Positions 40,558 through 58,745 of a DNA stretch of 64,000 nucleotides are shown here, in pieces. The translations under genes and the position numbers were made by a program. Numbering within the stretch: position 1 is the first letter of the stretch; every line of letters begins with the position of its first letter. The stretch comes from Paraphysomonas bandaiensis (lineage: Eukaryota > Protista > Chrysophyceae), in contig CBFFRP010000149.1 in NCBI GenBank assembly GCA_965644295.1, forward strand, positions 124,001 through 188,000, given 5' to 3'. Under the pieces are notes generated by a model that was not told the DNA's origin, did not search any database, and worked only from the letters and a program-made list of their open reading frames with translations.

Positions 40558-41938
40558 ATGATAGAAGATCCCATGGAAACCTCCTCTAGAGACCGTATTA
40601 TTCCCTGGGTAGAAAAATATCGTCCAGAGAGAGTAAGTGACGTCTCTCATCAAGAAGAAGTCACTGCAACTCTTAAAACAGCTATTTCTCAAGGATCTAT
40701 ACCTCATTTAATGTTTTATGGTCCTCCTGGTAGTGGTAAGACAACTACAGCATTAGCGATGGCACGTGAGTTATATGGGCCGGAGTTATATAGAAGCCGT
40801 ACGCTAGAATTGGTAAGAAATGAGTTGCATGTATTGATATTATTTATTACTGATTGATTTATATGGTAGAATGCATCTGATGAACGAGGTATAAAGGTTG
40901 TACGTGAGAAGATTAAAACATTTGCACAAGGAGCAGTCGGCTCGCAAAAACAGAGGTGATGTGCTATGTATACGATATGATGTGTCGTTAAAATTAGTGC
41001 AGTGGTTACCCATGTCCTCGGTTCAAACTTATTATTCTTGATGAAGCGGATACCATGACACCAGAGGCTCAGTCGGCTTTACGCCGTATCATGGAGGCGT
41101 ATTCGAAAGTTACTCGCTTTTGTCTCATCTGCAACTACGTCACTCGCATCATCGAACCATTGGCAAGTCGATGCGCTAAGTTCAGATTCAAAGCTCTATC
41201 CTTAGATTCAATGGTGGCGCGCTTAGAATATATTGCTGGTATGTGCCGGAGTCGTTTTGTGCAAGTTAAATGTGCTAATCTAATTATTTGTTTCGTTAGG
41301 TCAGGAAGGGGTAGATCTTGGCACAGGAGTGCTGGATAGAGTAATATTAGTATCCGAGGGAGACATGCGTAAAGCTGTCACTTTCTTGCAATCAGCGCAC
41401 GAGCTGTCGGGTAAGCAAGGGACAGTTACTGATGAAATGGTCCTGGATGTCAGCGGACAGGTAACACGGATATAGTTTATAACTGCCGAACATGAGTGTG
41501 CAATGATCGCGTTTGACATGACATTCAATTAGTGATATATTCCGTAGGTGCATCCTGATCTTCTTCTTTCCCTCTGGGAGACTCTCCGCTCACCATCTTC
41601 ATCATTTGACTCTATGAAAACTACAGTATCGCATATCGTTTCTGAAGGATATCCGATGACTGATCTGTTGTCCAAATTGCATGATGATGTGGTCCAGCAA
41701 TCAGAATTAAAAGATATAGACAAAGCTCTTATCTGCGAGAAAATAGCTCATGTACGTATAATCATCCAACGCAAGTGTTTAGCCTTATGTGCAAATGTAT
41801 CAGGCCGATCAGTGTCTGGTAGATGGGGCGTCAGAGCTACTCCAACTATGTGATGTATGTGCTTTTATAATGAGGAGAATTAAAGGTATACATTCATCTA
41901 CTGACAAGGTTTCTGTAGGAGCTGCTGAGAGTATGTGA
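40558..41938 (+). CDS. RFC4: Replication factor C small subunit (human RFC4 / yeast Rfc2 type), multi-exon
   Basis: [27 protein letters not shown]|[29 protein letters not shown] and [20 protein letters not shown]. Confidence 0.9.
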
Positions 41939-42441
41939 GTTTTTTCCTTGTCTGTGAAATAGAATTAGGTTGAGCCCATCGAAATAACTTAATAGCTGTA
42001 GACTGTGTCTGCCCTGAATATAAAGAGATTGCACTGATAAAGGATACGGTTTTATTAAAGCTGTCATCATTCGGAATTTCTTGTGTTGATTAGAATTCCG
42101 TTGCTTTCGTATACCCTGCCTGATACACTAAGCTAACGTATATTCCATTGCCATTTGGAATGTGCTTTGTAACAATACAAGAAACCTATACCACTGTATA
42201 TTTGGGATGTATTATTCAACCTAGTCAAAATGGTTGAACTACCTAGTCACACCAAAATTGGTGTAAAAACCTAGTCAAGTAGGTGAAAAACCTAGTCATT
42301 TAATAATTCATATTTTCAGTTTACAATGACTAGGTGTTTTAAGGTATTCACCTAGTCAAAAATAATAACTTCTACTCAAACATGGGAGCATACTCTAGCC
42401 ATCAATTAATGCAAATGCATCTATTGTACACATGCAATGCA

Positions 42442-43350
42442 TCACATTTCGTCTTCGCAATCGAACGAGAAATGCGCAGTTTCTCGTGACCAAGTCCGGT
42501 GAAGTTCGACAGCCTCCTTCATTTCATGGACATCGAACCCAACAATCTTAGGGTGTGGAAGTATGTCATCAGGGGCATCCGAGAACCGACACTGCCATCG
42601 AAGGAGTTTTTCATTCTTGTGATTCGCCACTACGCGGTAATCTACGCACATACCATTCAGGTACTGGGGGTGGCGAACGTACGTATTCTTCCAGTTCCCT
42701 GGCTTGAGGGCCATGACATCAATGGATTCATCATTGATTAAAGCTTTCGCTGCATTGCGAGGCCGGCTGCGTTTCCTAGCAGGCCTGATCGAGCTGGACA
42801 TGTGCTTCACATCAATGTCCCCTGGTGGCAATATTAAGAAATATAATGAACAAAGAAATGTACTACCCATACCTCTCAAGTGATGTACTGCTAGCGAGTG
42901 GGGGCAGTATCGACCATTGTCCCAAAACCTAGGGCAGCTACAAACAAGAGAGGTGCAGGTTCTGCGCTTCACTTTGTAGGGAACCTCTCGAACAACATAC
43001 ATACTGAGAAATCTGTTACAGAATGATTAGTACTCTATTCAGACGCATAAGTACAATACTACACCTCTCCCTACATTCCCCCAGTGAAAGTCGATCTTTC
43101 CTTTTGACGGAATGAAACATATCTATATAAGATTTGCACATTCTGTTCTCCCTCGTATGTTCAATAATGAACAAGTTCCTCTTTGAGTTCACGTACCTAT
43201 AAAAATTTATTCGCTGTTAATGATGAATAATCCATGAGTCGTTATACTTACCAATGAACCTCATTTCTACCCTGGACTATAACATCCATGCGCTTACAGT
43301 TTTGAGGACCGGGGTCTACAATTGCGCATGCTCCAGTGAGGCAGTCTCGA
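42442..43350 (-). pseudogene. C-terminal fragment of a MULE-type transposase (SWIM zinc finger, RKRSRP basic motif)
   Basis: VCSCPRFWDNGRYCPHSLAV (CxCx(n)CxH), then RPARKRSRPRNA. No DDE core found and upstream frames are broken at the array. Confidence 0.7.
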
Positions 43351-43360
43351 TGCACATGAC

Positions 43361-46300
43361 CATGATGATACTGTAAGACTGATGACACACTCATGATGAT
43401 ACTGTAAGACTGATGACACACTCATGATGCTCTAAGACTGATGACACACTCATGATACTGTAAGACTGATGACACACTCATGATGCTGATGTTCTGATGA
43501 CACACTCATGATGCTGATGTTCTGATGACACACTCATGATGCTGATGTTCTGATGACACACTCATGATACTGTAAGACTGATGACACACTCATGATGCTG
43601 TAAGACTGATGACACACTCATGATGCTGATGTTCTGATGACACACTCATGATACTGTAAGACTGATGACACACTCATGATGCTGTAAGACTGATGACACA
43701 CTCATGATGCTGGTGTTCTGATGACACACTCATGATGCTGATGTTCTGATGACACACTCATGATACTGTAAGACTGACGACACACTCATGATGCTGTAAG
43801 ACTGATGACACACTCATGATGCTGATGTTCTGATGACACACTCATGATGCTGATGTTCTGATGACACACTCATGATACTGTAAGACTGATGACACACTCA
43901 TGATGCTGATGTTCTGATGACACACTCATGATACTGTAAGACTGATGACACACTCATGATACTGTAAGACTGATGACACACTCATGATGCTGTAAGACTG
44001 ATGACACACTCATGATGCTGATGTTCTGATGACACACTCATGATACTGTAAGACTGATGACACACTCATGATGCTGATGCTCTGATGACACACTCATGAT
44101 GCTGATGTTCTGATGACACACTCATGATGCTGTAAGACTGATGACACACTCATGATGCTGATGTTCTGATGACACACTCATGATGCTGTAAGACTGATGA
44201 CACACTCATGATACTGTAAGACTGATGACACACTCATGATGCTGTAAGACTGATGACACACTCATGATACTGTAAGACTGATGACACACTCATGATACTG
44301 TAAGACTGATGACACACTCATGATGCTGTAAGACTGATGACACACTCATGATGCTGTAAGACTGATGACACACTCCTCATGATGCTGTAAGACTGATGAC
44401 ACACTCATGATGCTGATGTTCTGATGACACACTCATGATACTGTAAGACTGATGACACACTCATGATGCTGATGCTCTGATGACACACTCATGATGCTGA
44501 TGTTCTGATGACACACTCATGATACTGTAAGACTGATGACACACTCATGATGCTGATGTTCTGATGACACACTCATGATGCTGTAAGACTGATGACACAC
44601 TCATGATGCTGATGTTCTGATGACACACTCATGATGCTGTAAGACTGATGACACACTCATGATACTGTAAGACTGATGACACACTCATGATACTGTAAGA
44701 CTGATGACACACTCATGATACTGTAAGACTGATGACACACTCATGATACTGTAAGACTGATGACACACTCATGATGCTGATGTTCTGATGACACACTCAT
44801 GATGCTGTAAGACTGATGACACACTCATGATGCTGATGTTCTGATGACACACTCATGATGCTGTAAGACTGATGACACACTCATGATGCTGATGCTCTGA
44901 TGACACACTCATGATGCTGATGTTCTGATGACACACTCATGATACTGTAAGACTGATGACACACTCATGATGCTGATGTTCTGATGACACACTCATGATG
45001 CTGTAAGACTGATGACACACTCATGATGCTGATGTTCTGATGACACACTCATGATGCTGTAAGACTGATGACACACTCATGATACTGTAAGACTGATGAC
45101 ACACTCATGATACTGTAAGACTGATGACACACTCATGATGCTGTAAGACTGATGACACACTCATGATACTGTAAGACTGATGACACACTCATGATGCTGA
45201 TGTTCTGATGACACACTCATGATACTGTAAGACTGATGACACACTCATGATACTGTAAGACTGATGACACACTCATGATACTGTAAGACTGATGACACAC
45301 TCATGATGCTGATGTTCTGATGACACACTCATGATACTGTAAGACTGATGACACACTCATGATGCTGTAAGACTGATGACACACTCATGATGCTGTAAGA
45401 CTGATGACACACTCATGATACTGTAAGACTGATGACACACTCATGATGCTGTAAGACTGATGACACACTCATGATGCTGTAAGACTGATGACACACTCAT
45501 GATGCTGATGTTCTGATGACACACTCATGATGCTGTAAGACTGATGACACACTCATGATACTGTAAGACTGATGACACACTCATGATACTGTAAGACTGA
45601 TGACACACTCATGATGCTGTAAGACTGATGACACACTCATGATACTGTAAGACTGATGACACACTCATGATGCTGATGTTCTGATGACACACTCATGATA
45701 CTGTAAGACTGATGACACACTCATGATACTGTAAGACTGATGACACACTCATGATGCTGATGTTCTGATGACACACTCATGATACTGTAAGACTGATGAC
45801 ACACTCATGATACTGTAAGACTGATGACACACTCATGATGCTGTAAGACTGATGACACACTCATGATGCTGTAAGACTGATGACACACTCATGATACTGT
45901 AAGACTGATGACACACTCCTCATGATGCTGTAAGACTGATGGCACACTCATGATACTGTAAGACTGATGACACACTCATGATACTGTAAGACTGATGACA
46001 CACTCATGATGCTGATGTTCTGATGACACACTCATGATACTGTAAGACTGATGACACACTCATGATACTGTAAGACTGATGACACACTCATGATGCTGAT
46101 GTTCTGATGACACACTCATGATACTGTAAGACTGATGACACACTCATGATACTGTAAGACTGATGACACACTCATGATGCTGTAAGACTGATGACACACT
46201 CATGATACTGTAAGACTGATGACACACTCATGATACTGTAAGACTGATGACACACTCATGATGCTGATGTTCTGATGACACACTCATGATGCTGTAAGAC

Positions 46301-47047
46301 TGATGACACACTCATGATACTGTAAGACTGATGACACACTCATGATGCTGTAAGACTGATGACACACTCATGATGCTGTAAGACTGATGACACACTCATG
46401 ATGCTGTAAGACTGATGACACACTCCTCATGATGCTGTAAGACTGATGACACACTCCTCATGATGCTGTAAGACTGATGACACACTCATGATGCTGATGT
46501 TCTGATGACACACTCATGATACTGTAAGACTGATGACACACTCATGATACTGTAAGACTGATGACACACTCATGATGCTGATGTTCTGATGACACACTCA
46601 TGATACTGTAAGACTGATGACACACTCATGATACTGTAAGACTGATGACACACTCATGATACTGTAAGACTGATGACACACTCATGATACTGTAAGACTG
46701 ATGACACACTCATGATACTGTAAGACTGATGACACACTCATGATGCTGATGTTCTGATGACACACTCATGATGCTGTAAGACTGATGACACACTCATGAT
46801 ACTGTAAGACTGATGACACACTCATGATACTGTAAGACTGATGACACACTCATGATGCTGTAAGACTGATGACACACTCATGATGCTGTAAGACTGATGA
46901 CACACTCATGATGCTGTAAGACTGATGACACACTCCTCATGATGCTGTAAGACTGATGACACACTCCTCATGATGCTGTAAGACTGATGACACACTCCTC
47001 ATGATGCTGTAAGACTGATGACACACTCATGATGCTGATGTTCTGAT
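43361..47047. repeat. 28-bp minisatellite array 1 (~130 units)
   Basis: Constant CTGATGACACACTCATGAT plus a variable 9-mer. Period 28 (e.g. 44701, 44729, 44757). Confidence 0.97.
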
Positions 47048-47629
47048 TGATGCTGCTCTACAGTCCACTTCAATGATGCTGCTTTTAGAAGTTTGTTCCC
47101 TGAAAACCTCCTTTTTTTCCGTTGGACTAAAAATAGGGAGATTTATGCACCCCTGAAAGCCAATGCAGCAATCGAAGTCATTCATTCAGTGCTGAAGTGA
47201 AGGAAGATGAGCGCCATCACTCCCAGCATATGAAGATCTCAAGATGTCCTGCGGATCATAGAGTGAGTTATACCCACAGCTTCATGGACCCTCCTCCCCA
47301 TAACACTCACAGGGACCATCGCTATATGCATACATGCTACAGATAGGCTAGATAGACATACACGTACATCTGTGTTATGTAGATATGTATATATGAGCTT
47401 ATTGTTATGTTCGAGTGTTTGTTTTGATGCTCTGTAAGCCACTAATATATTGTGTGGTGCGAGATGGTATCTTAGACAGTCACAGTGTGTAATCAATGGA
47501 TATAAGAACGACTAGGTTGAATACCAAAGTTGACTAGGTTGAGTCATTTATTATTTTGACTAGGTTATTCCACCAAAAATAGCGTGACTAGGTAATTCAA
47601 CCAATTTGACTAGGTTGAATAATATTTCC
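47048..47629. repeat. MULE right-end unit, copy 1 (~582 bp)
   Basis: Repeated apparently identically at 49260-49841, 51133-51714, 52082-52663 and 53028-53610. Each copy ends in the TIR. Confidence 0.95.
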
Positions 47630-49259
47630 ATGATGCTGATGTTCTGATGACACACTCATGATACTGTAAGACTGATGACACACTCATGATGCTGATGTTC
47701 TGATGACACACTCATGATGCTGTAAGACTGATGACACACTCATGATGCTGATGTTCTGATGACACACTCATGATGCTGATGTTCTGATGACACACTCATG
47801 ATACTGTAAGACTGATGACACACTCATGATACTGTAAGACTGATGACACACTCATGATACTGTAAGACTGATGACACACTCATGATACTGTAAGACTGAT
47901 GACACACTCATGATGCTGTAAGACTGATGACACACTCATGATGCTGTAAGACTGATGACACACTCCTCATGATGCTGATGCTCTGATGACACACTCATGA
48001 TGCTGATGTTCTGATGACACACTCATGATACTGTAAGACTGATGACACACTCATGATGCTGATGTTCTGATGACACACTCATGATGCTGTAAGACTGATG
48101 ACACACTCATGATGCTGATGTTCTGATGACACACTCATGATGCTGTAAGACTGATGACACACTCATGATACTGTAAGACTGATGACACACTCATGATACT
48201 GTAAGACTGATGACACACTCATGATGCTGATGCTCTGATGACACACTCATGATGCTGATGTTCTGATGACACACTCATGATACTGTAAGACTGATGACAC
48301 ACTCATGATGCTGATGTTCTGATGACACACTCATGATGCTGTAAGACTGATGACACACTCATGATGCTGATGTTCTGATGACACACTCATGATGCTGTAA
48401 GACTGATGACACACTCATGATGCTGTAAGACTGATGACACACTCATGATGCTGATGTTCTGATGACACACTCATGATACTGTAAGACTGATGACACACTC
48501 ATGATGCTGATGTTCTGATGACACACTCATGATGCTGTAAGACTGATGACACACTCATGATGCTGATGTTCTGATGACACACTCATGATGCTGTAAGACT
48601 GATGACACACTCATGATGCTGATGTTCTGATGACACACTCATGATACTGTAAGACTGATGACACACTCATGATGCTGATGCTCTGATGACACACTCATGA
48701 TGCTGATGTTCTGATGACACACTCATGATACTGTAAGACTGATGACACACTCATGATGCTGATGTTCTGATGACACACTCATGATGCTGTAAGACTGATG
48801 ACACACTCATGATGCTGATGTTCTGATGACACACTCATGATGCTGTAAGACTGATGACACACTCATGATACTGTAAGACTGATGACACACTCATGATACT
48901 GTAAGACTGATGACACACTCATGATGCTGTAAGACTGATGACACACTCCTCATGATGCTGTAAGACTGATGACACACTCATGATGCTGATGTTCTGATGA
49001 CACACTCATGATACTGTAAGACTGATGACACACTCATGATACTGTAAGACTGATGACACACTCATGATGCTGTAAGACTGATGACACACTCATGATGCTG
49101 TAAGACTGATGACACACTCATGATGCTGTAAGACTGATGACACACTCCTCATGATGCTGTAAGACTGATGACACACTCCTCATGATGCTGTAAGACTGAT
49201 GACACACTCCTCATGATGCTGTAAGACTGATGACACACTCATGATGCTGATGTTCTGAT
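47630..49259. repeat. 28-bp minisatellite array 2 (~58 units)
   Basis: Same unit as array 1. Confidence 0.95.
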
Positions 49260-49841
49260 TGATGCTGCTCTACAGTCCACTTCAATGATGCTGCTTTTAG
49301 AAGTTTGTTCCCTGAAAACCTCCTTTTTTTCCGTTGGACTAAAAATAGGGAGATTTATGCACCCCTGAAAGCCAATGCAGCAATCGAAGTCATTCATTCA
49401 GTGCTGAAGTGAAGGAAGATGAGCGCCATCACTCCCAGCATATGAAGATCTCAAGATGTCCTGCGGATCATAGAGTGAGTTATACCCACAGCTTCATGGA
49501 CCCTCCTCCCCATAACACTCACAGGGACCATCGCTATATGCATACATGCTACAGATAGGCTAGATAGACATACACGTACATCTGTGTTATGTAGATATGT
49601 ATATATGAGCTTATTGTTATGTTCGAGTGTTTGTTTTGATGCTCTGTAAGCCACTAATATATTGTGTGGTGCGAGATGGTATCTTAGACAGTCACAGTGT
49701 GTAATCAATGGATATAAGAACGACTAGGTTGAATACCAAAGTTGACTAGGTTGAGTCATTTATTATTTTGACTAGGTTATTCCACCAAAAATAGCGTGAC
49801 TAGGTAATTCAACCAATTTGACTAGGTTGAATAATATTTCC
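49260..49841. repeat. MULE right-end unit, copy 2
   Basis: Offset +2212 from copy 1. Confidence 0.95.
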
Positions 49842-51132
49842 ATGATGCTGATGTTCTGATGACACACTCATGATACTGTAAGACTGATGACACACTCATG
49901 ATGCTGATGTTCTGATGACACACTCATGATGCTGTAAGACTGATGACACACTCATGATGCTGATGTTCTGATGACACACTCATGATGCTGATGTTCTGAT
50001 GACACACTCATGATACTGTAAGACTGATGACACACTCATGATACTGTAAGACTGATGACACACTCATGATACTGTAAGACTGATGACACACTCATGATAC
50101 TGTAAGACTGATGACACACTCATGATGCTGTAAGACTGATGACACACTCATGATGCTGTAAGACTGATGACACACTCCTCATGATGCTGTAAGACTGATG
50201 ACACACTCATGATGCTGATGTTCTGATGACACACTCATGATACTGTAAGACTGATGACACACTCATGATGCTGATGCTCTGATGACACACTCATGATGCT
50301 GATGTTCTGATGACACACTCATGATACTGTAAGACTGATGACACACTCATGATGCTGATGTTCTGATGACACACTCATGATGCTGTAAGACTGATGACAC
50401 ACTCATGATGCTGATGTTCTGATGACACACTCATGATGCTGTAAGACTGATGACACACTCATGATACTGTAAGACTGATGACACACTCATGATACTGTAA
50501 GACTGATGACACACTCATGATGCTGTAAGACTGATGACACACTCATGATACTGTAAGACTGATGACACTCTCATGATGCTGATGTTCTGATGACACACTC
50601 ATGATACTGTAAGACTGATGACACACTCATGATACTGTAAGACTGATGACACACTCATGATGCTGATGTTCTGATGACACACTCATGATACTGTAAGACT
50701 GATGACACACTCATGATACTGTAAGACTGATGACACACTCATGATGCTGTAAGACTGATGACACACTCATGATGCTGATGTTCTGATGACACACTCATGA
50801 TACTGTAAGACTGATGACACACTCATGATGCTGATGTTCTGATGACACACTCATGATGCTGTAAGACTGATGACACACTCATGATACTGTAAGACTGATG
50901 ACACACTCATGATACTGTAAGACTGATGACACACTCATGATGCTGTAAGACTGATGACACACTCATGATGCTGTAAGACTGATGACACACTCATGATGCT
51001 GTAAGACTGATGACACACTCCTCATGATGCTGTAAGACTGATGACACACTCCTCATGATGCTGTAAGACTGATGACACACTCCTCATGATGCTGTAAGAC
51101 TGATGACACACTCATGATGCTGATGTTCTGAT
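49842..51132. repeat. 28-bp minisatellite array 3 (~46 units)
   Basis: Same unit as array 1. Confidence 0.95.
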
Positions 51133-51714
51133 TGATGCTGCTCTACAGTCCACTTCAATGATGCTGCTTTTAGAAGTTTGTTCCCTGAAAACCTCCTTTT
51201 TTTCCGTTGGACTAAAAATAGGGAGATTTATGCACCCCTGAAAGCCAATGCAGCAATCGAAGTCATTCATTCAGTGCTGAAGTGAAGGAAGATGAGCGCC
51301 ATCACTCCCAGCATATGAAGATCTCAAGATGTCCTGCGGATCATAGAGTGAGTTATACCCACAGCTTCATGGACCCTCCTCCCCATAACACTCACAGGGA
51401 CCATCGCTATATGCATACATGCTACAGATAGGCTAGATAGACATACACGTACATCTGTGTTATGTAGATATGTATATATGAGCTTATTGTTATGTTCGAG
51501 TGTTTGTTTTGATGCTCTGTAAGCCACTAATATATTGTGTGGTGCGAGATGGTATCTTAGACAGTCACAGTGTGTAATCAATGGATATAAGAACGACTAG
51601 GTTGAATACCAAAGTTGACTAGGTTGAGTCATTTATTATTTTGACTAGGTTATTCCACCAAAAATAGCGTGACTAGGTAATTCAACCAATTTGACTAGGT
51701 TGAATAATATTTCC
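51133..51714. repeat. MULE right-end unit, copy 3
   Basis: Offset +4085 from copy 1. Confidence 0.95.
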
Positions 51715-52081
51715 ATGATGCTGATGTTCTGATGACACACTCATGATACTGTAAGACTGATGACACACTCATGATGCTGATGTTCTGATGACACACTCAT
51801 GATGCTGTAAGACTGATGACACACTCATGATACTGTAAGACTGATGACACACTCATGATACTGTAAGACTGATGACACACTCATGATGCTGTAAGACTGA
51901 TGACACACTCATGATGCTGTAAGACTGATGACACACTCCTCATGATGCTGTAAGACTGATGACACACTCCTCATGATGCTGTAAGACTGATGACACACTC
52001 CTCATGATGCTGTAAGACTGATGACACACTCCTCATGATGCTGTAAGACTGATGACACACTCATGATGCTGATGTTCTGAT
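51715..52081. repeat. 28-bp minisatellite array 4 (13 units)
   Basis: Same unit as array 1. Confidence 0.95.
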
Positions 52082-52663
52082 TGATGCTGCTCTACAGTCC
52101 ACTTCAATGATGCTGCTTTTAGAAGTTTGTTCCCTGAAAACCTCCTTTTTTTCCGTTGGACTAAAAATAGGGAGATTTATGCACCCCTGAAAGCCAATGC
52201 AGCAATCGAAGTCATTCATTCAGTGCTGAAGTGAAGGAAGATGAGCGCCATCACTCCCAGCATATGAAGATCTCAAGATGTCCTGCGGATCATAGAGTGA
52301 GTTATACCCACAGCTTCATGGACCCTCCTCCCCATAACACTCACAGGGACCATCGCTATATGCATACATGCTACAGATAGGCTAGATAGACATACACGTA
52401 CATCTGTGTTATGTAGATATGTATATATGAGCTTATTGTTATGTTCGAGTGTTTGTTTTGATGCTCTGTAAGCCACTAATATATTGTGTGGTGCGAGATG
52501 GTATCTTAGACAGTCACAGTGTGTAATCAATGGATATAAGAACGACTAGGTTGAATACCAAAGTTGACTAGGTTGAGTCATTTATTATTTTGACTAGGTT
52601 ATTCCACCAAAAATAGCGTGACTAGGTAATTCAACCAATTTGACTAGGTTGAATAATATTTCC
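52082..52663. repeat. MULE right-end unit, copy 4
   Basis: Offset +5034 from copy 1. Confidence 0.95.
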
Positions 52664-53027
52664 ATGATGCTGATGTTCTGATGACACACTCATGATACTG
52701 TAAGACTGATGACACACTCATGATGCTGATGTTCTGATGACACACTCATGATGCTGTAAGACTGATGACACACTCATGATACTGTAAGACTGATGACACA
52801 CTCATGATACTGTAAGACTGATGACACACTCATGATGCTGTAAGACTGATGACACACTCATGATGCTGTAAGACTGATGACACACTCATGATGCTGTAAG
52901 ACTGATGACACACTCCTCATGATGCTGTAAGACTGATGACACACTCCTCATGATGCTGTAAGACTGATGACACACTCCTCATGATGCTGTAAGACTGATG
53001 ACACACTCATGATGCTGATGTTCTGAT
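52664..53027. repeat. 28-bp minisatellite array 5 (13 units)
   Basis: Same unit as array 1. Confidence 0.95.
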
Positions 53028-53610
53028 TGATGCTGCTCTACAGTCCACTTCAATGATGCTGCTTTTAGAAGTTTGTTCCCTGAAAACCTCCTTTTTTTCC
53101 GTTGGACTAAAAATAGGGAGATTTATGCACCCCTGAAAGCCAATGCAGCAATCGAAGTCATTCATTCAGTGCTGAAGTGAAGGAAGATGAGCGCCATCAC
53201 TCCCAGCATATGAAGATCTCAAGATGTCCTGCGGATCATAGAGTGAGTTATACCCACAGCTTCATGGACCCTCCTCCCCATAACACTCACAGGGACCATC
53301 GCTATATGCATACATGCTACAGATAGGCTAGATAGACATACACGTACATCTGTGTTATGTAGATATGTATATATGAGCTTATTGTTATGTTCGAGTGTTT
53401 GTTTTGATGCTCTGTAAGCCACTAATATATTGTGTGGTGCGAGATGGTATCTTAGACAGTCACAGTGTGTAATCAATGGATATAAGAACGACTAGGTTGA
53501 ATACCAAAGTTGACTAGGTTGAGTCATTTATTATTTTGACTAGGTTATTCCACCAAAAATAGCGTGACTAGGTAATTCAACCAATTTGACTAGGTTGAAT
53601 AATATTTTCC
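53028..53610. repeat. MULE right-end unit, copy 5 (true terminus)
   Basis: Ends AATATTTTCC and is followed by the TSD. Confidence 0.95.
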
Positions 53611-53728
53611 TGTATATTTTCTATTTTCAAGTTTAAGTTATTTGAAAAACCGTTTAGCGGTAACACCGAATACAAACAAATTTACATCGTCGACGGTACT
53701 CACAATAAAAACTAATTTTGCGACGCCG

Positions 53729-56700
53729 TCAATCACATTCATATAGTAGTTCTAACTCTTCGTCACTAGGACGAGTCCATGTGGACTCCTTTGTTTTTCG
53801 GTTGTAGTAGTATGGAGCGCTCGCCGAGTCGGTAGAGACTATACGCCATAAAGTTTTCTTCTTGCGTTTACTTTTTTTGGGGCCACTCTCACCACTGGAT
53901 ACTTGAACCGTAGGTAGAACCTGGCACACAATAACATTTAAGCATCTACAGCTTCCATAATGGGAAAACTCACAGTGCCATTCTTTGGTGGATCTAAGGA
54001 GCCTGAATTGTCCATACTGGAGCCACTTTCAGCGGGTTCGCCACTATGAAGATTGTGCCTTTTCAAAATAGAATCTGCTAGGGCGAGAGCGGCTGCAGCA
54101 TTCACTTTTCCTTCATCCTCGCATTCCTTCGGTGGCGACACAGCAAATGTACTACCAGCACAAATCGGAGGGCCCTCGTTATCTAAATGGCTTAATTCGC
54201 CTATTTCCGCATGGTCATGACTACTGGCACGACGGAGATGACCGGCAGCGGCTGCTGCAAATGAGCTGCGCGGAGCAATCTCGTTGTCACTATCGGATAC
54301 CTGACTTGGCGGTATATTCGTGCTCACAGCTGATAGAGCTAATCGTTGGGCTGCTTTCATAGCAAATAAACTTCTTCGCCTTACGGGCTTAGAGTCCTCC
54401 GCCTTTGAAGTCTCGTCAGCAACAACAGGGACAGACAAAGTTGAGGTTGCACACGATACGTCGCTAGATTTATCCAAACCTGATGTTGTTGAAACTTCAG
54501 ACACACACTCAGATTCTGAAAGAACCTCAGACGCGGAAGTCTCTACACAGCTACTTCCAATACAAACATCAGCACTTGCACATGTTGAGGCTTGCGAGGA
54601 ATCGCTAGAAATCAATTTCTTTCCCCTATCCACTGTCGAATCATCGTTGCATTCCTCATGGCTAGGTCCTGCCGACTTCCTCTCATCAGTGAAATTGTCC
54701 TCAACACCGATTGATGTGTTGTCTTGCAATATTTCAACAGGGCGGTCATGGATATCATTGTCTTCTGCGGTACAATTATTTTCATTTCCAGTTTCACTGT
54801 GGATAATCTCGCCATTGATATATGTCATATTCATTTCTTCTTCCATTGGCCGTTCCCATTGCGTTTCATCCGTAAGTCGATTGTGATAATAATACCGACC
54901 TGAAGCTGGGTCCTCTAGTATCTGCCATAATAGTCGTGGCTTATGAAGAGATTCACTTTCATCTGGGTATTCAATGCTGTCGTTTACGCCGCCTTTGCGA
55001 TGAACCTCACAGGTGATCTCTGAAACCTGAAATTAATGTAAGTAGACCTTACGACTCGTTCAAGCATATAACCTCATCACTCTCGTCATAGTCATTACCA
55101 CCATTGTACGTCGAAGGTTCATCATAACTGCATTCATGTTCACCGTCGTGATTGCTTTGATAGTAACTCTCATATGTGTCTTCTCCGTTGTACTCACTAC
55201 ATTGAGATTCATTTTTTCCTACATCATGATTTTGGCAGTGCTCAGACAAAGGGGAGATATCTAAATACTTCTGTGAACAATTTCCTCCACTTGAAGCGCA
55301 TTGATCGTGGTTTGACAAATCAAGTTGACCACTTGAGGAAGCTACAGATTCACCCGCTGTGTCATCCACAGGTGCAGCCGATACTCCATTGTGCTTGTTG
55401 AATATTTCATTCGCGCGAGCTATTGCCTCGGCAATATCAACACCTTCAACGGAACCAGACTCGGAAATTTTATCTTGTTGCTGCTTCTGTCGGACTGGAA
55501 TTGTGCTTGGCTTAGTTTTCACGGGAGGCCTTTTCTTAACGGTAGCCTTGCTTGTAATAGACTGCTTACTAATAGATTTACTCGCATGTCGTTGTTGCGT
55601 GGAATGGGATTTGCTTTGCTCGGACAACGGTAAAAAAGCTGAAGTGGGGGAATCTAACTTTTTCCGGGTCGCCACTTTCTTCCCATGAACTCCAGTCCAC
55701 TGACTATCGATATCAGAATGAGAATCTGACATAAGTGACTGTTCAGACGAAGGGCTAAATCGAGACTGTAAGTAATTCTTTATCAACGATGATGTCATAG
55801 TTCGACTTTCTCCTGTTGGTAGGCCAGTGTTCCCACTAGAAGTATTCTCTAGAGACTCCATCCCCAAATGACTAGACCGCAGGCTCTCTAGAAATCTCTG
55901 CGGAGAAAACATTGGCGAATTTACATCCATCTCAGAGTCATTTGAGGATGACTTGGTGCGGATGACATTCTTTCTTTTCGTATTAGCAGGAGGTGGAAGA
56001 CGAGGTTCTGGAGGTTTATTCGAGGAAGGTTTAGTCATCTCACCACGCACATTGGCCTTTATCGAATTATTGTTTGATTTTGAAGATTTGCTGGCTTCAA
56101 TGTCCCCACTTCGAGCGCTGTACAACGTAGAATTTTCTAATTCTTTCTCCAACTTCTTAATTTTCGCGACATCTTCCCTGTGCTGGTCTTTGAGCTGATC
56201 TATCATTTCAGATGATGCAGACAAATCATGTTGTAGCTGAGTGTTAGTCTATATATACTCCCTATTAAAAGTATGAAACATAGATGGCTACCGTGCACGT
56301 ACCTTTAGAAATATTTTTTTTGTTCTTTGGAGCTCATCCGCTTGAAGCAAGACGGATGCTTCCATCAAACAAACTCGGTGGTATATATCCTCGTTAATAC
56401 CATTTTTGGCACTATAATCCGCTGTGAGTGGAGTGCTCTGAGTCTGAAGCCATGAATGATACTGCTGCAGCCACATCCATCGCTCCTCCTGAAGAGCATC
56501 TGCTTCGTCCATCTCCTCTTTCCGTCTGTCAAGCTCTTCCCTCTGAGCCTTCAACACACGGCACTGCAGGCGAGATTTCGCATCGAAGGAATCGCATTGC
56601 TCATCGACTAAGGCAAGGCGTGCCGACAACACTTCACCAGATGGGGAGTGGTCAATATCAACTGAAAACTCATCATCTTCAAATACTGCTGCTAAAATGG

Positions 56701-58197
56701 CCCTTTTCTCCTCGCGAAGTATCCTAGCCTCTTCCTGAGAAGAATAGAGTCCTTTCATCAAGCGGGAATTTTCTTCTTTGAGATGCACAAGCTCTTCACT
56801 CACACATGCATCAAAATCCATATTGTCGCGTGTCTGACTCGACGCGGGATTTTCATTGGACGAAGATGATCCAAGCGTACCAATCTCTTTCGCGAGCGAC
56901 GAAAGGTCAATGCTTCCGCCACACTTCTGGAGAACTACCTGAAGAAGAGACTTCAAACGAGTAATTTCCTGTTGACAGCGTTCAATTTCCGCCCCAGAGG
57001 AGCCGTACGCTGACACAGTATTTGCACTGGCCACCACTTGTACTTTCATTGCCCTATCTGCAAACTGAAGAGTAGAAGTAGTCTCTTCGATGCACGAAAT
57101 CGATGGTGAAATCGTGACAATAAATAGTGTCTGAGTGTTCCCACCGAGACTGTCTTGAAGAAGCCGGGTTAGTTTGGAGTCTCTATAAGGAATGTGGGCT
57201 CGACTAGGCTTGAGTAAGGCCGATATACAATTACCGAGAGCTGAAAGGGAGCGGTTGATAGAAGTGAGCTCCTTAATCCTAGCTTCAGAAAAGGTTGCCA
57301 TCTGATGACTTTTCCATTTCTCAGATCCTGCTAAATCTACGAGACATATTTTCGACCGACGTAGCTCCCTACCACTTTCAATTAACATGTAAACTATGAA
57401 CACTGTGTGGGATCTAGACGAATGATCGTTCATGTCTGTTGCAGCAACGCTGCGGCACTTTGCTCCATCCCAGAGCACCTGCAAAACTTCATCTACAGTG
57501 GTCACAGACACTCTTGTTAACCCTGGAACAACAATTTCTCCTTTCTTATTTTCCCGTATTTCTAAGTTTTTATTTGCATCCTGCGAGTCCAAGAGATCAA
57601 TTATTTTAATGTCGTTATACAACTCCACATACGACACAGAGATACTAAAGCTTCCTCCCATTTTGTTCAGATTTCCAAAGAGCCATTGCATTGATCGTGG
57701 AACAATTCCCATATACATAGAATCACGAGATATGTCTGTTAACGACTTTTCCATACATGCCGAGTCAGTAGCCATCTCCCAAAGATCATACCCAAGCATC
57801 GTAAACGTTTTTCCCTATAATAAATAAATCAACTAGATATCGAAATTGTAAATACAGAGCACAAAAAATTGAACTAACCGTTCCAGTTTGTCCATCTGTT
57901 TAACAGGTTAAACATGTCAGTTAAAGTAATATTAAATAACATACATGTAAACACTGTACAGTTATATCCTTGTACAGAGCTCTCTAGTAGAGGTATTATA
58001 CTTTCAAACACCTCTTCTTGTGAAGCTTCTTCAGTTAAAACAGCATCTAGAATAAATTTCCGTCCATAGCTTGATCCTGAATGACTTTCTACTTGAATAC
58101 ATTGACCTTTACTACTAATAGCCATTTCATCATTTCGAGAGATTTCTTTTGAGTTTAATGGCCTAATTCGTGCTAAAACTTTAATTCTATCATGCAT
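53729..58197 (-). CDS. N-terminal-motor kinesin with coiled coil, long disordered tail and two WW domains
   Basis: IKVLARIRP, GYNCTVFTY|GQTGT|GKTFTM, NDHSSRSH, LVDLAGSE and HIPYRDSKLTRLLQDSLGGN. WW domains LWQILEDPASGRYYYHNRLTDETQWERP and LWRIVSTDSASAPYYYNRKTKESTWTRP, joined in frame by GT-AG introns. Confidence 0.88.
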
Positions 58198-58745
58198 TTT
58201 GAACTTTCCTATAGCTCACTTATATATTGGATCCTATTTCAGTAGTTATAAGGCATATTACACCACTTAGTATACATCAGCCATACTCAATTGTGTGTTT
58301 AAGAATTGATTCCATGCAATATATGGAACAAACAGCTCTTTGTATACATTTTTTAAGGTAAAATTACTATATATTCGAATTTTTTGTTAGTTTTTTGTGT
58401 TTTTTATGCTAAATATATAAATAAAATAGGCATCTGGTGATAAATTATGCCCCTTTCAAATATAAAAGCAACTTTTATATATCATAAACTCTAAAAGTTC
58501 TACTTTTGTAAGAAAAGACATACAGCTGTACTGCTGGTCCTGTCGAAATTGAGAAGTGAAAATGAAGTGTAAAAATCAAGACCTGTGATTCGATAATATC
58601 TCACTTCTTTGAACTTCATGATATATCAGTGAAGTATATGTATATTCATAGTGAACTCTGTAATGAATCATAATAATAATCAAATCATAAGACATTCATT
58701 TCATTCTATCAGAGATACAAGATTGCTTTTGTTCAGGTTGAAAAC

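Follow-up and report, generated by a model that had tools for sequence, protein, structure and literature searches.

A 64,000-nucleotide (nt) stretch of Paraphysomonas bandaiensis DNA (contig CBFFRP010000149.1, positions 124,001 to 188,000, or C149:124001-188000; hereafter the window) carries a DNA transposon with one left end and five right ends. A single left terminal inverted repeat (TIR) is followed by a 1.1-kb stump of the 3′ part of a transposase gene and then by five blocks, each made of an array of 28-bp repeats and a 586-bp right end, and a perfect 9-bp target site duplication (TSD), TGTATATTT, surrounds the entire structure. The element is very probably a non-autonomous Mutator-like element (MULE), judging from its sequence. 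The explanation that we prefer, and regard as probable, is that a right end derived from the element itself was joined to the element's own array and that the resulting dimer was expanded to five blocks by unequal exchange.

One left end, five right ends and one target site duplication

The whole structure occupies window positions 42195-53619 (C149:166195-177619). Its features, with the arrays numbered A1 to A5, are as follows.

42195..42203, no strand: left TSD copy TGTATATTT, by direct reading, the same as 53611-53619
42204..42360, plus strand: left TIR, beginning GGGATGTATTATTC, with five direct copies and one inverted copy of the subterminal motif CCTAGTC
42442..43362, minus strand: transposase 3′ stump, with a SWIM-like CxCx14CxH motif, an AT-hook-like RKRSRPR, a C-terminal domain and an upstream exon piece, HGHVHRDCL; it ends exactly at the array
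43362..47043, plus strand: array A1, 3682 bp, ~131 units of 28 bp (28- and 31-bp variants)
47044..47629, plus strand: right end 1 (internal), terminating ...TTTCC and joined directly to A2
47630..49255, plus strand: array A2, 1626 bp, with a 348-nt prefix in common with A3 and a 262-nt suffix in common with A1
49256..49841, plus strand: right end 2 (internal), from sequence comparison of the right ends
49842..51128, plus strand: array A3, 1287 bp, collinear with the right part of A1 (478-nt exact block, 346-nt suffix)
51129..51714, plus strand: right end 3 (internal), from sequence comparison of the right ends
51715..52077, plus strand: array A4, 363 bp, one unit variant (3 bp) apart from A5
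52078..52663, plus strand: right end 4 (internal), from sequence comparison of the right ends
52664..53023, plus strand: array A5, 360 bp, exactly the final 360 nt of A3
53024..53610, plus strand: right end 5 (outer, the true element terminus), terminating ...TTTTCC
53611..53619, no strand: right TSD copy TGTATATTT, by direct reading

If the preceding C is counted, the TSD is 10 bp long. Tandem Repeats Finder (TRF) places the 28-bp repeat in three rows (43365-51122, 51714-52071 and 52663-53017), which were split at the right ends to give A1-A5. Together the five arrays measure 7318 bp, or ~261 units, and the right ends show 100% identity to one another over 584 bp. The left TIR arm (42205-42278) pairs with every one of them, over 74 nt at 85% identity in four cases and over 69 nt at 87% in the case of the outer end, and each right end contains five GACTAGG subterminal motifs. 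Measured from the left TIR to the successive right ends, the nested sizes are 5.43, 7.64, 9.51, 10.46 and 11.41 kb. A first-pass annotation, made by a model from the letters of the window, had described a single left TIR, a SWIM stump and five units of 28-bp array plus right end inside a perfect 9-bp TSD, with about 7.3 kb (~260 units) of minisatellite and nested sizes of ~5.4, 7.6, 9.5, 10.5 and 11.4 kb. Every one of these structural statements was reproduced, the sizes came out at the same values when recomputed, and the higher-order repeat of array and end is genuine at the locus. The idea that the array is an open reading frame (ORF) continuing the transposase was dropped, as one frame has a TGA at the unit boundary and the ORFs are only 57 amino acids long or less.

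A single junction repeated four times

All four internal junctions are identical, with ...GGTTGAATAATATTTCC followed directly by ATGATGCTG (that is, ...TTTCC and then ATGATGCTG), and the first 9 nt beyond each internal end belong to the array. In the assembled genome (G000; 62.6 Mb in 669 contigs), the 28-nt junction string is found at these four places in the window and nowhere else, and no other tandem right ends are present among the 77 exact right termini. The terminus of the family reads ...TTTCCC in 75 of these 77. The internal copies read ...TTTCC followed by ATGATG, and the outer copy reads ...TTTTCC followed by the TSD, which places the junction within 1 nt of the consensus TIR terminus. 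No useful microhomology exists between the end (...TTTCC) and the sequence that precedes the array entry point (...ACACTC).

The internal ends match the element's own outer end at 584 of 584 positions, and the nearest other copy in the genome is 99.3% identical (4 differences). Therefore, the extra ends came from the element itself or from a sister copy, after the surviving copies of the family had dispersed.

Gains and losses of units separate the arrays

For comparison, the arrays were coded as strings of unit variants, with three 28-bp types, a 31-bp type that has an extra CTC, and one rarer type. All inner arrays begin alike with T-a-T-g, and A2, A3 and A5 end alike with g-g-X-X-X-g plus a partial unit, A4 being one unit variant off at this point. 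Aligned with A1, both A2 and A3 correspond collinearly to its right part, with exact blocks of 344-478 nt and suffixes of 262-346 nt in common, and comparison of the arrays places the entry point ~24 units into A1. The shared blocks differ by gains and losses of units only, with zero point substitutions. We infer that this pattern would be expected if the right part of the array was first duplicated together with the right end, and if unequal exchange and slippage then followed.

Probable joining of a right end to its own array

In the explanation that we prefer, a right end of the same element, or of its copy on the sister chromatid, would have been joined ~24 units into its own array, most likely by a transposase-dependent event. 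We favor a transposase because such enzymes produce breaks of just this kind, within 1 nt of a TIR terminus. The MULE enzyme is known to cut both strands at the element ends, leaving hairpins on the flanking DNA, and the terminal motif influences MULE transposition (PMC5499845).

Three routes could lead to such a joining. In the first, a sister copy would be excised and re-inserted into the array, and an exchange between arrays would then remove the second left end, together with the partner of any TSD that the second insertion had made; double or nested insertion followed by unequal exchange is a documented pathway for dimers of Drosophila transposable elements (TEs) (PMC5932611). In the second, a left end and a right end lying on different sister chromatids would take part in sister-chromatid (alternative) transposition, a reaction that in the case of maize Ac yields tandem direct duplications (PMC3744419, PMC4270019). 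In the third, a right end cut by transposase would be end-joined to a broken array. The product of any of these routes would be left end, array, right end, partial array and right end. Its two arrays would offer kilobases of homology, and unequal sister-chromatid exchange between them would lead to five blocks with trimmed inner arrays. DNA-transposon dimers, including those with tail-to-internal junctions, are known to grow by unequal exchange (PMC5932611). That a transposase took part, and that the amplification proceeded by unequal exchange, are both inferred from what the locus looks like today.

Several points weigh against this explanation. The internal ends are one base short of the consensus and the outer end differs from it at position 3, and at least two small changes must be assumed. 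The three transposase-dependent routes predict the same sequence and are inseparable here. The presence of five identical 586-bp blocks between the arrays is known from the assembly alone, and A4 and A5 are one 3-bp unit variant apart, so the true count could be four. The MULE label of the transposase rests on sub-threshold Pfam matches together with a negative hhalign comparison, and an intact transposase of the family was not found in the genome, where fragments of the DDE region are present at only ~7 loci.

A more specific version, that a transposase break at the element's own end on sister chromatids seeded the higher-order repeat of minisatellite and transposon end, is tentative, and we would call it unlikely rather than likely. 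If it is true, the locus would be a natural snapshot of how a satellite inside an element is nucleated by the transposase itself, and this in a lineage whose TE biology is almost unstudied. Its right ends have 25 predicted binding motifs, and the locus could then be a sink for transposase or a hotspot for breaks and rearrangements.

Other explanations for the five blocks

The possibility that the structure is an assembly artefact, with one real right end or at any rate fewer than five, and with a minisatellite-rich repeat mis-expanded by the assembler, would fit with the 100% identity of the five blocks, with the single 3-bp unit variant that separates A4 from A5, and with the fact that such a structure is found just once in the genome. 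However, the arrays between the ends differ greatly in length (3682, 1626, 1287, 363 and 360 bp) and also in the order of their units, simple deletions being enough to connect these orders, and the junction of end and array is a specific novel sequence that must be present in the reads at least once. Further, the locus has unique flanks and a central position in a contig of >188 kb, and an assembly in which 669 contigs make up 62.6 Mb and in which 3.7-kb minisatellites are spanned would imply long reads capable of crossing 11 kb. We consider an artefact improbable. A search for a haplotig or an empty site found neither, both flanks of the locus being single-copy among the 669 contigs.

A slightly more remote explanation is that a partial array with its right end was circularised, copied by rolling circle and re-integrated into the array by homology. 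Rolling-circle models for TE-derived satellites are discussed in a review (PMC12628747), and such a process would give a repeated, identical, terminus-proximal junction and perfectly identical right ends. But its copies should begin with identical arrays, so that the observed range of 360-1626 bp would need several later deletions. The same data are explained by unequal exchange alone, and there is no direct evidence of circles.

Equally doubtful is a proposal of the first-pass annotation, in which the internal right ends pair with the left TIR so that nested units of 5.4-11.4 kb transpose, spread the satellite and leave remnants of array plus end behind. The 74-nt TIR and the five GACTAGG motifs are kept in all five right ends, and the family has recently been active (see below), both of which favor the idea. 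Yet no trace of such mobilization was found genome-wide: the junction of end and array exists only in the window, none of the 77 termini marks a second tandem-end locus, and no solo remnant of array plus right end was found. In addition, none of the five right termini has the GGG that is otherwise invariant, no intact transposase of the family was found, and ordinary single-end copies fully account for dispersal of the satellite.

The least probable explanation is a transposase-independent duplication, by replication slippage, template switching or end joining, with a breakpoint near the TIR terminus by chance and unequal exchange afterward; although minisatellites are fragile and recombinogenic, and a textbook integration product would not fall 1 nt short of the consensus terminus as this junction does, a chance break within 1 nt of the terminus would be expected at ~1 in several hundred to a thousand positions, and the end lacks microhomology to the sequence before the array entry point, as described above.

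The element is very probably Mutator-like

The assignment to the MULEs is based on TSDs of 9-10 bp, on long TIRs that have subterminal repeats, and on a stump of the SWIM type. The first-pass annotation had reached the same identity, which holds with the qualification that Pfam support for both DDE and SWIM domains is sub-threshold. MULEs typically have TSDs of 9-11 bp, and duplications of 9 or 10 bp flank the window copy and thirteen other complete copies. The TIRs are long (74-nt arms, 85% identity), with 5-6 CCTAGTC/GACTAGG motifs per end and a conserved terminal motif, GGG, that is present in 75 of the 77 right ends and also in left ends.

What remains of the transposase in the window copy is the last ~240 codons, in three pieces and cut off at the array; there is no intact gene, and the DDE region is absent. 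The minus-strand ORF at 42442-43002 bears the CxCx14CxH motif, with the sequence CSCPRFWDNGRYCPHSLAVHH. Pfam SWIM scores are 12-15 bits against a cut-off of 19.6 bits (E 0.12 for the window stump, and also 0.022 and 0.14), all of them sub-threshold. By BLASTP, the window stump matches the C-terminus of a metagenomic homolog, P0005 (E 1e-30), and a DDE piece from a 75%-related copy matches the N-terminus of P0005 (E 2e-19). Since stump and DDE piece match opposite ends of P0005, they belong to one protein family. The PF10551 match in the 75%-related copy (L046:635-1099; E 0.027, 15.3 bits) is below the 27.6-bit cut-off, and the match of PF20700 ("Mutator") in P0005 is also sub-threshold (E 0.11). 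The motifs MDH...VDCxxHV and NNxxES are readable, and the layout of the protein family is second D/CxxH, then NNxxE, then CxC...CxH, then AT-hook.

A HMMER scan of 1.8 billion representatives found 15 relatives of the protein family, and 0 of the 15 has a Pfam domain. A word-indexed protein search with P0005 returned only P0005 itself, a protein atlas search returned only generic transposase look-alikes that all score <0.9, and a profile search of PDB matched nothing.

The first-pass annotation had asked for the autonomous parent, and the search for it ended with the fragments at ~7 loci mentioned above. The DDE-fragment loci that were inspected, on C668 and C202, are broken or interrupted. 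The C668 copy (G000:C668:1-2240, L062+L046) is the best DDE-bearing relative. It was rejected as a parent, being interrupted by another repeat and adjoining a retrotransposon ORF; a 30-residue piece of the interrupting repeat occurs at >30 sites in the genome, and the adjoining ORF, at the contig start, is 343 residues long and retrotransposon-like. Another copy, L045, is itself a deletion derivative and was likewise set aside.

The one clear MULE protein of the genome, on C461, is a different protein, a MULE-HECT fusion, and comparison of the family protein with it by hhalign detected no relation, so it too was discarded as a parent. It is encoded by an uninterrupted 974-codon ORF (C461:10718-13642; L063:1419-4343, plus strand) with a MULE domain at residues 224-321 (34.1 bits) and a HECT domain at residues 694-927 (33.1 bits). 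This is the sole Pfam MULE domain above cut-off found in the genome, and the ORF is a candidate domesticated transposase-HECT fusion. A 12-bp unit, reading (MYVC)n, is repeated in tandem just upstream of it (L063:185-1067).

The minisatellite is a trait of the whole family

To compare copies of the family across the genome, we used 1.5-kb flanks and four small further stretches, and the arrays on C620, C297, C107 and C66 are accordingly lower bounds. The genome has at least 35 right-end copies with 81-99% identity to those of the window and many left-end copies too, and nearly all right-end copies adjoin 28-bp units. Fourteen of the 15 both-ended copies that we inspected have matching 9- or 10-bp flanks, and all 14 flanks are distinct from one another. 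The flanks are unmatched in one copy only (C314:52564-55598, L021+L032), which has both ends and a 1.3-kb array but reads CTTAAAAAT on one side and ATGGGTCAC on the other. Recombination between two insertions, or rearrangement of the site, probably produced this copy. Copies that are 98-99% alike and that have intact TSDs indicate that the family has recently been active.

The arrays elsewhere in the family range from ~2 units up to 64 (C263), 71 (C435) and ~95 (C66, a lower bound), and with the window included, arrays of 1.7 to ~131 units lie between family ends at >25 loci. The 19-mer core of the repeat occurs 1170 times in the genome, 230 of them in the window. All arrays open to inspection are attached to family ends. 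A 2.1-kb array on C435 is an apparent exception, but it has a left end and a right end that is truncated after 105 bp. The repeat was thus independent of the TIRs in no locus inspected, as the first-pass annotation had supposed, and the same array is found inside the TIRs with different TSDs in at least 14 copies. Because these array-bearing copies each have their own TSD, the array was already part of the element at the time of transposition. As a trait, the minisatellite is old, hypervariable and common to the family; it predates dispersal and is not special to this locus, and the suggestion that it was generated here does not stand.

Two types of left end share one kind of array and right end: a 1.16-kb type with the stump, as in the window, and a 314-bp type, which are 82% alike. 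The copies compared with window positions 42204-43362 in this respect were L009, L010, L015, L018, L022, L026, L028 and L064, and the stump type has a variant with a 691-882 deletion on C338, C263 and C238. The two types point to shuffling of modules, by recombination or template switching, and to a family that would be modular or chimeric.

Besides the outer end in the window, the only other terminus that reads ...TTTTCC, on C395, belongs to an unrelated small element that shares just a 57-bp TIR. Four termini elsewhere (C141, C150, C378 and C412) end in two Cs. None of them bears the junction of end and array, and for this reason we do not read them as products of the locus. In the case of C378 and C412, earlier matches suggest other subfamilies (a truncated right end and 88% TIRs).

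The array replaces the catalytic core

Relatives without an array are L034 (on C25), which is 96% identical at the junction, L038, and L045-L048, which are 75%-related. Their sequence runs straight through the point where the array starts and on into the coding sequence of the transposase (...LLQHGHVHRD...). Because it continues past this point, the array occupies the exact site at which the catalytic core was lost by deletion, in agreement with the first-pass annotation, which had placed it where the DDE core should be.

The first-pass annotation had also suggested that the satellite arose from the element's own sequence, pointing to degenerate echoes of the repeat at the start of the right end. 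The echoes are real, with ATGATGCTG recurring there. When the 31 nt past the junction in L034 are compared with the repeat unit, 23 of 31 align (p ~0.03 by shuffling), and such an alignment of coding sequence to the unit is no more than suggestive. Further, the most diverged full right-end copy (92.6% identical; L029, C68:20689-24255, at ~1420-1500) has ~1.7 degenerate units at the array site, which may show the minisatellite as it was ancestrally, before expansion. Together, the alignment and the ~1.7 units make derivation of the repeat from the element's own sequence plausible, though they do not prove it.

On C25, L034 is accompanied by L035, another left-part copy without an array (C25:46224-47333 and 57338-58305); the two are 93-94% identical to the window, 11 kb apart and in the same orientation. 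The interior of L034 runs into a gene, on the other strand, with a TIR-domain-like motif (DVFLSHNWG), "TIR" here being the name of a protein domain.

Comparison with known systems

Transposons that contain tandem repeats and DNA-transposon dimer arrays have both been described already, and the locus is neither a new kind of element nor evidence for a new mechanism. In DTC84/pearl of bivalves (PMC3879986) and Tetris of Drosophila virilis (PMC4079207), TIRs and a TSD enclose an internal array as they do here, and miDNA4 and Xstir of Xenopus are likewise presented as tandem-repeat-containing non-autonomous DNA transposons in a review (PMC12628747). In this group, as here, almost every copy has its own number of array units, the array moves together with the element, and its start and end are fixed while the middle varies. 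The window element and its family have the same combination of a variable array enclosed by TIRs and TSD with no intact transposase gene in the element, and the inspected loci include no free satellite array that lacks element ends. The differences are that the family is Mutator-like, with 9-10-bp TSDs and a SWIM-type stump, and lives in a protist, and that DTC84 has 1-5 core repeats whereas arrays here reach 95-131 units (2.7-3.7 kb).

Tandem arrays derived from dimers include those of hobo (~16 units), Bari1 and the P-related array of Drosophila guanche (McGurk and Barbash 2018, PMC5932611). As in those arrays, every unit here has the identical junction (four junctions in all), with small TIR defects at the junction, and the array of blocks is recent, locus-specific and euchromatic. 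A tail-to-internal class of junction has been described among them, some of which may reflect nested insertions (PMC5932611). Unlike those arrays, the repeated unit is an internal minisatellite plus one end, with one left end and one TSD, and not the whole element, and the homology that drives exchange is the element's own minisatellite.

Alternative (sister-chromatid or reversed-ends) transposition of maize Ac/Ds (PMC3744419, PMC4270019) gives composite insertions and tandem direct duplications that are bounded by a transposon terminus and an insertion target, much as would be the case here, where the junction comes to within 1 nt of the terminus of the consensus. The Ac/Ds cases use the ends of two nearby hAT elements and have been shown genetically, whereas here a single MULE would use two sister copies with a target inside the element, and the case is known from sequence alone. 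Finally, plant tandem LTR-retrotransposons of the form LTR-int-LTR-int-LTR (PMC11899658) resemble the locus in that terminal and internal modules alternate inside one TSD and in that unequal recombination takes place between the element's own repeats, but they are a different class of TE in which homology comes from the long terminal repeats (LTRs) and not from a minisatellite. In the literature searched, we found no description of an internal minisatellite plus one end amplified inside a single element with one TSD. What is distinct here is the Mutator-like superfamily, the protist host, the unusually large arrays and the amplified unit of minisatellite and one end.

The locus is a clear, recent example of a known route from transposon toward satellite DNA. 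The change from transposon to tandem satellite is usually inferred from old, degraded arrays, and here every step is still legible: a family with variable arrays, relatives that have no array, a copy with ~1.7 units, and one very young locus with five units. If reads confirm the structure, it would be a compact test case for transposase cuts as the start of arrays and for an internal minisatellite as the driver of their growth, and it would also provide a hypervariable marker for strains of the protist.

Genomic setting

The element lies between the 3′ ends of two convergent genes, in gene-rich DNA and not in a satellite-rich region, and this position predicts ordinary silencing rather than centromere function. 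On the upstream side, window positions 40558-41853 (plus strand) contain exons of a gene that resembles the small subunit of replication factor C. On the downstream side, positions 53938-57799 (minus strand) contain a serine-rich ORF followed by a kinesin-motor-like gene (SSRSHTVF...LVDLAGSE).

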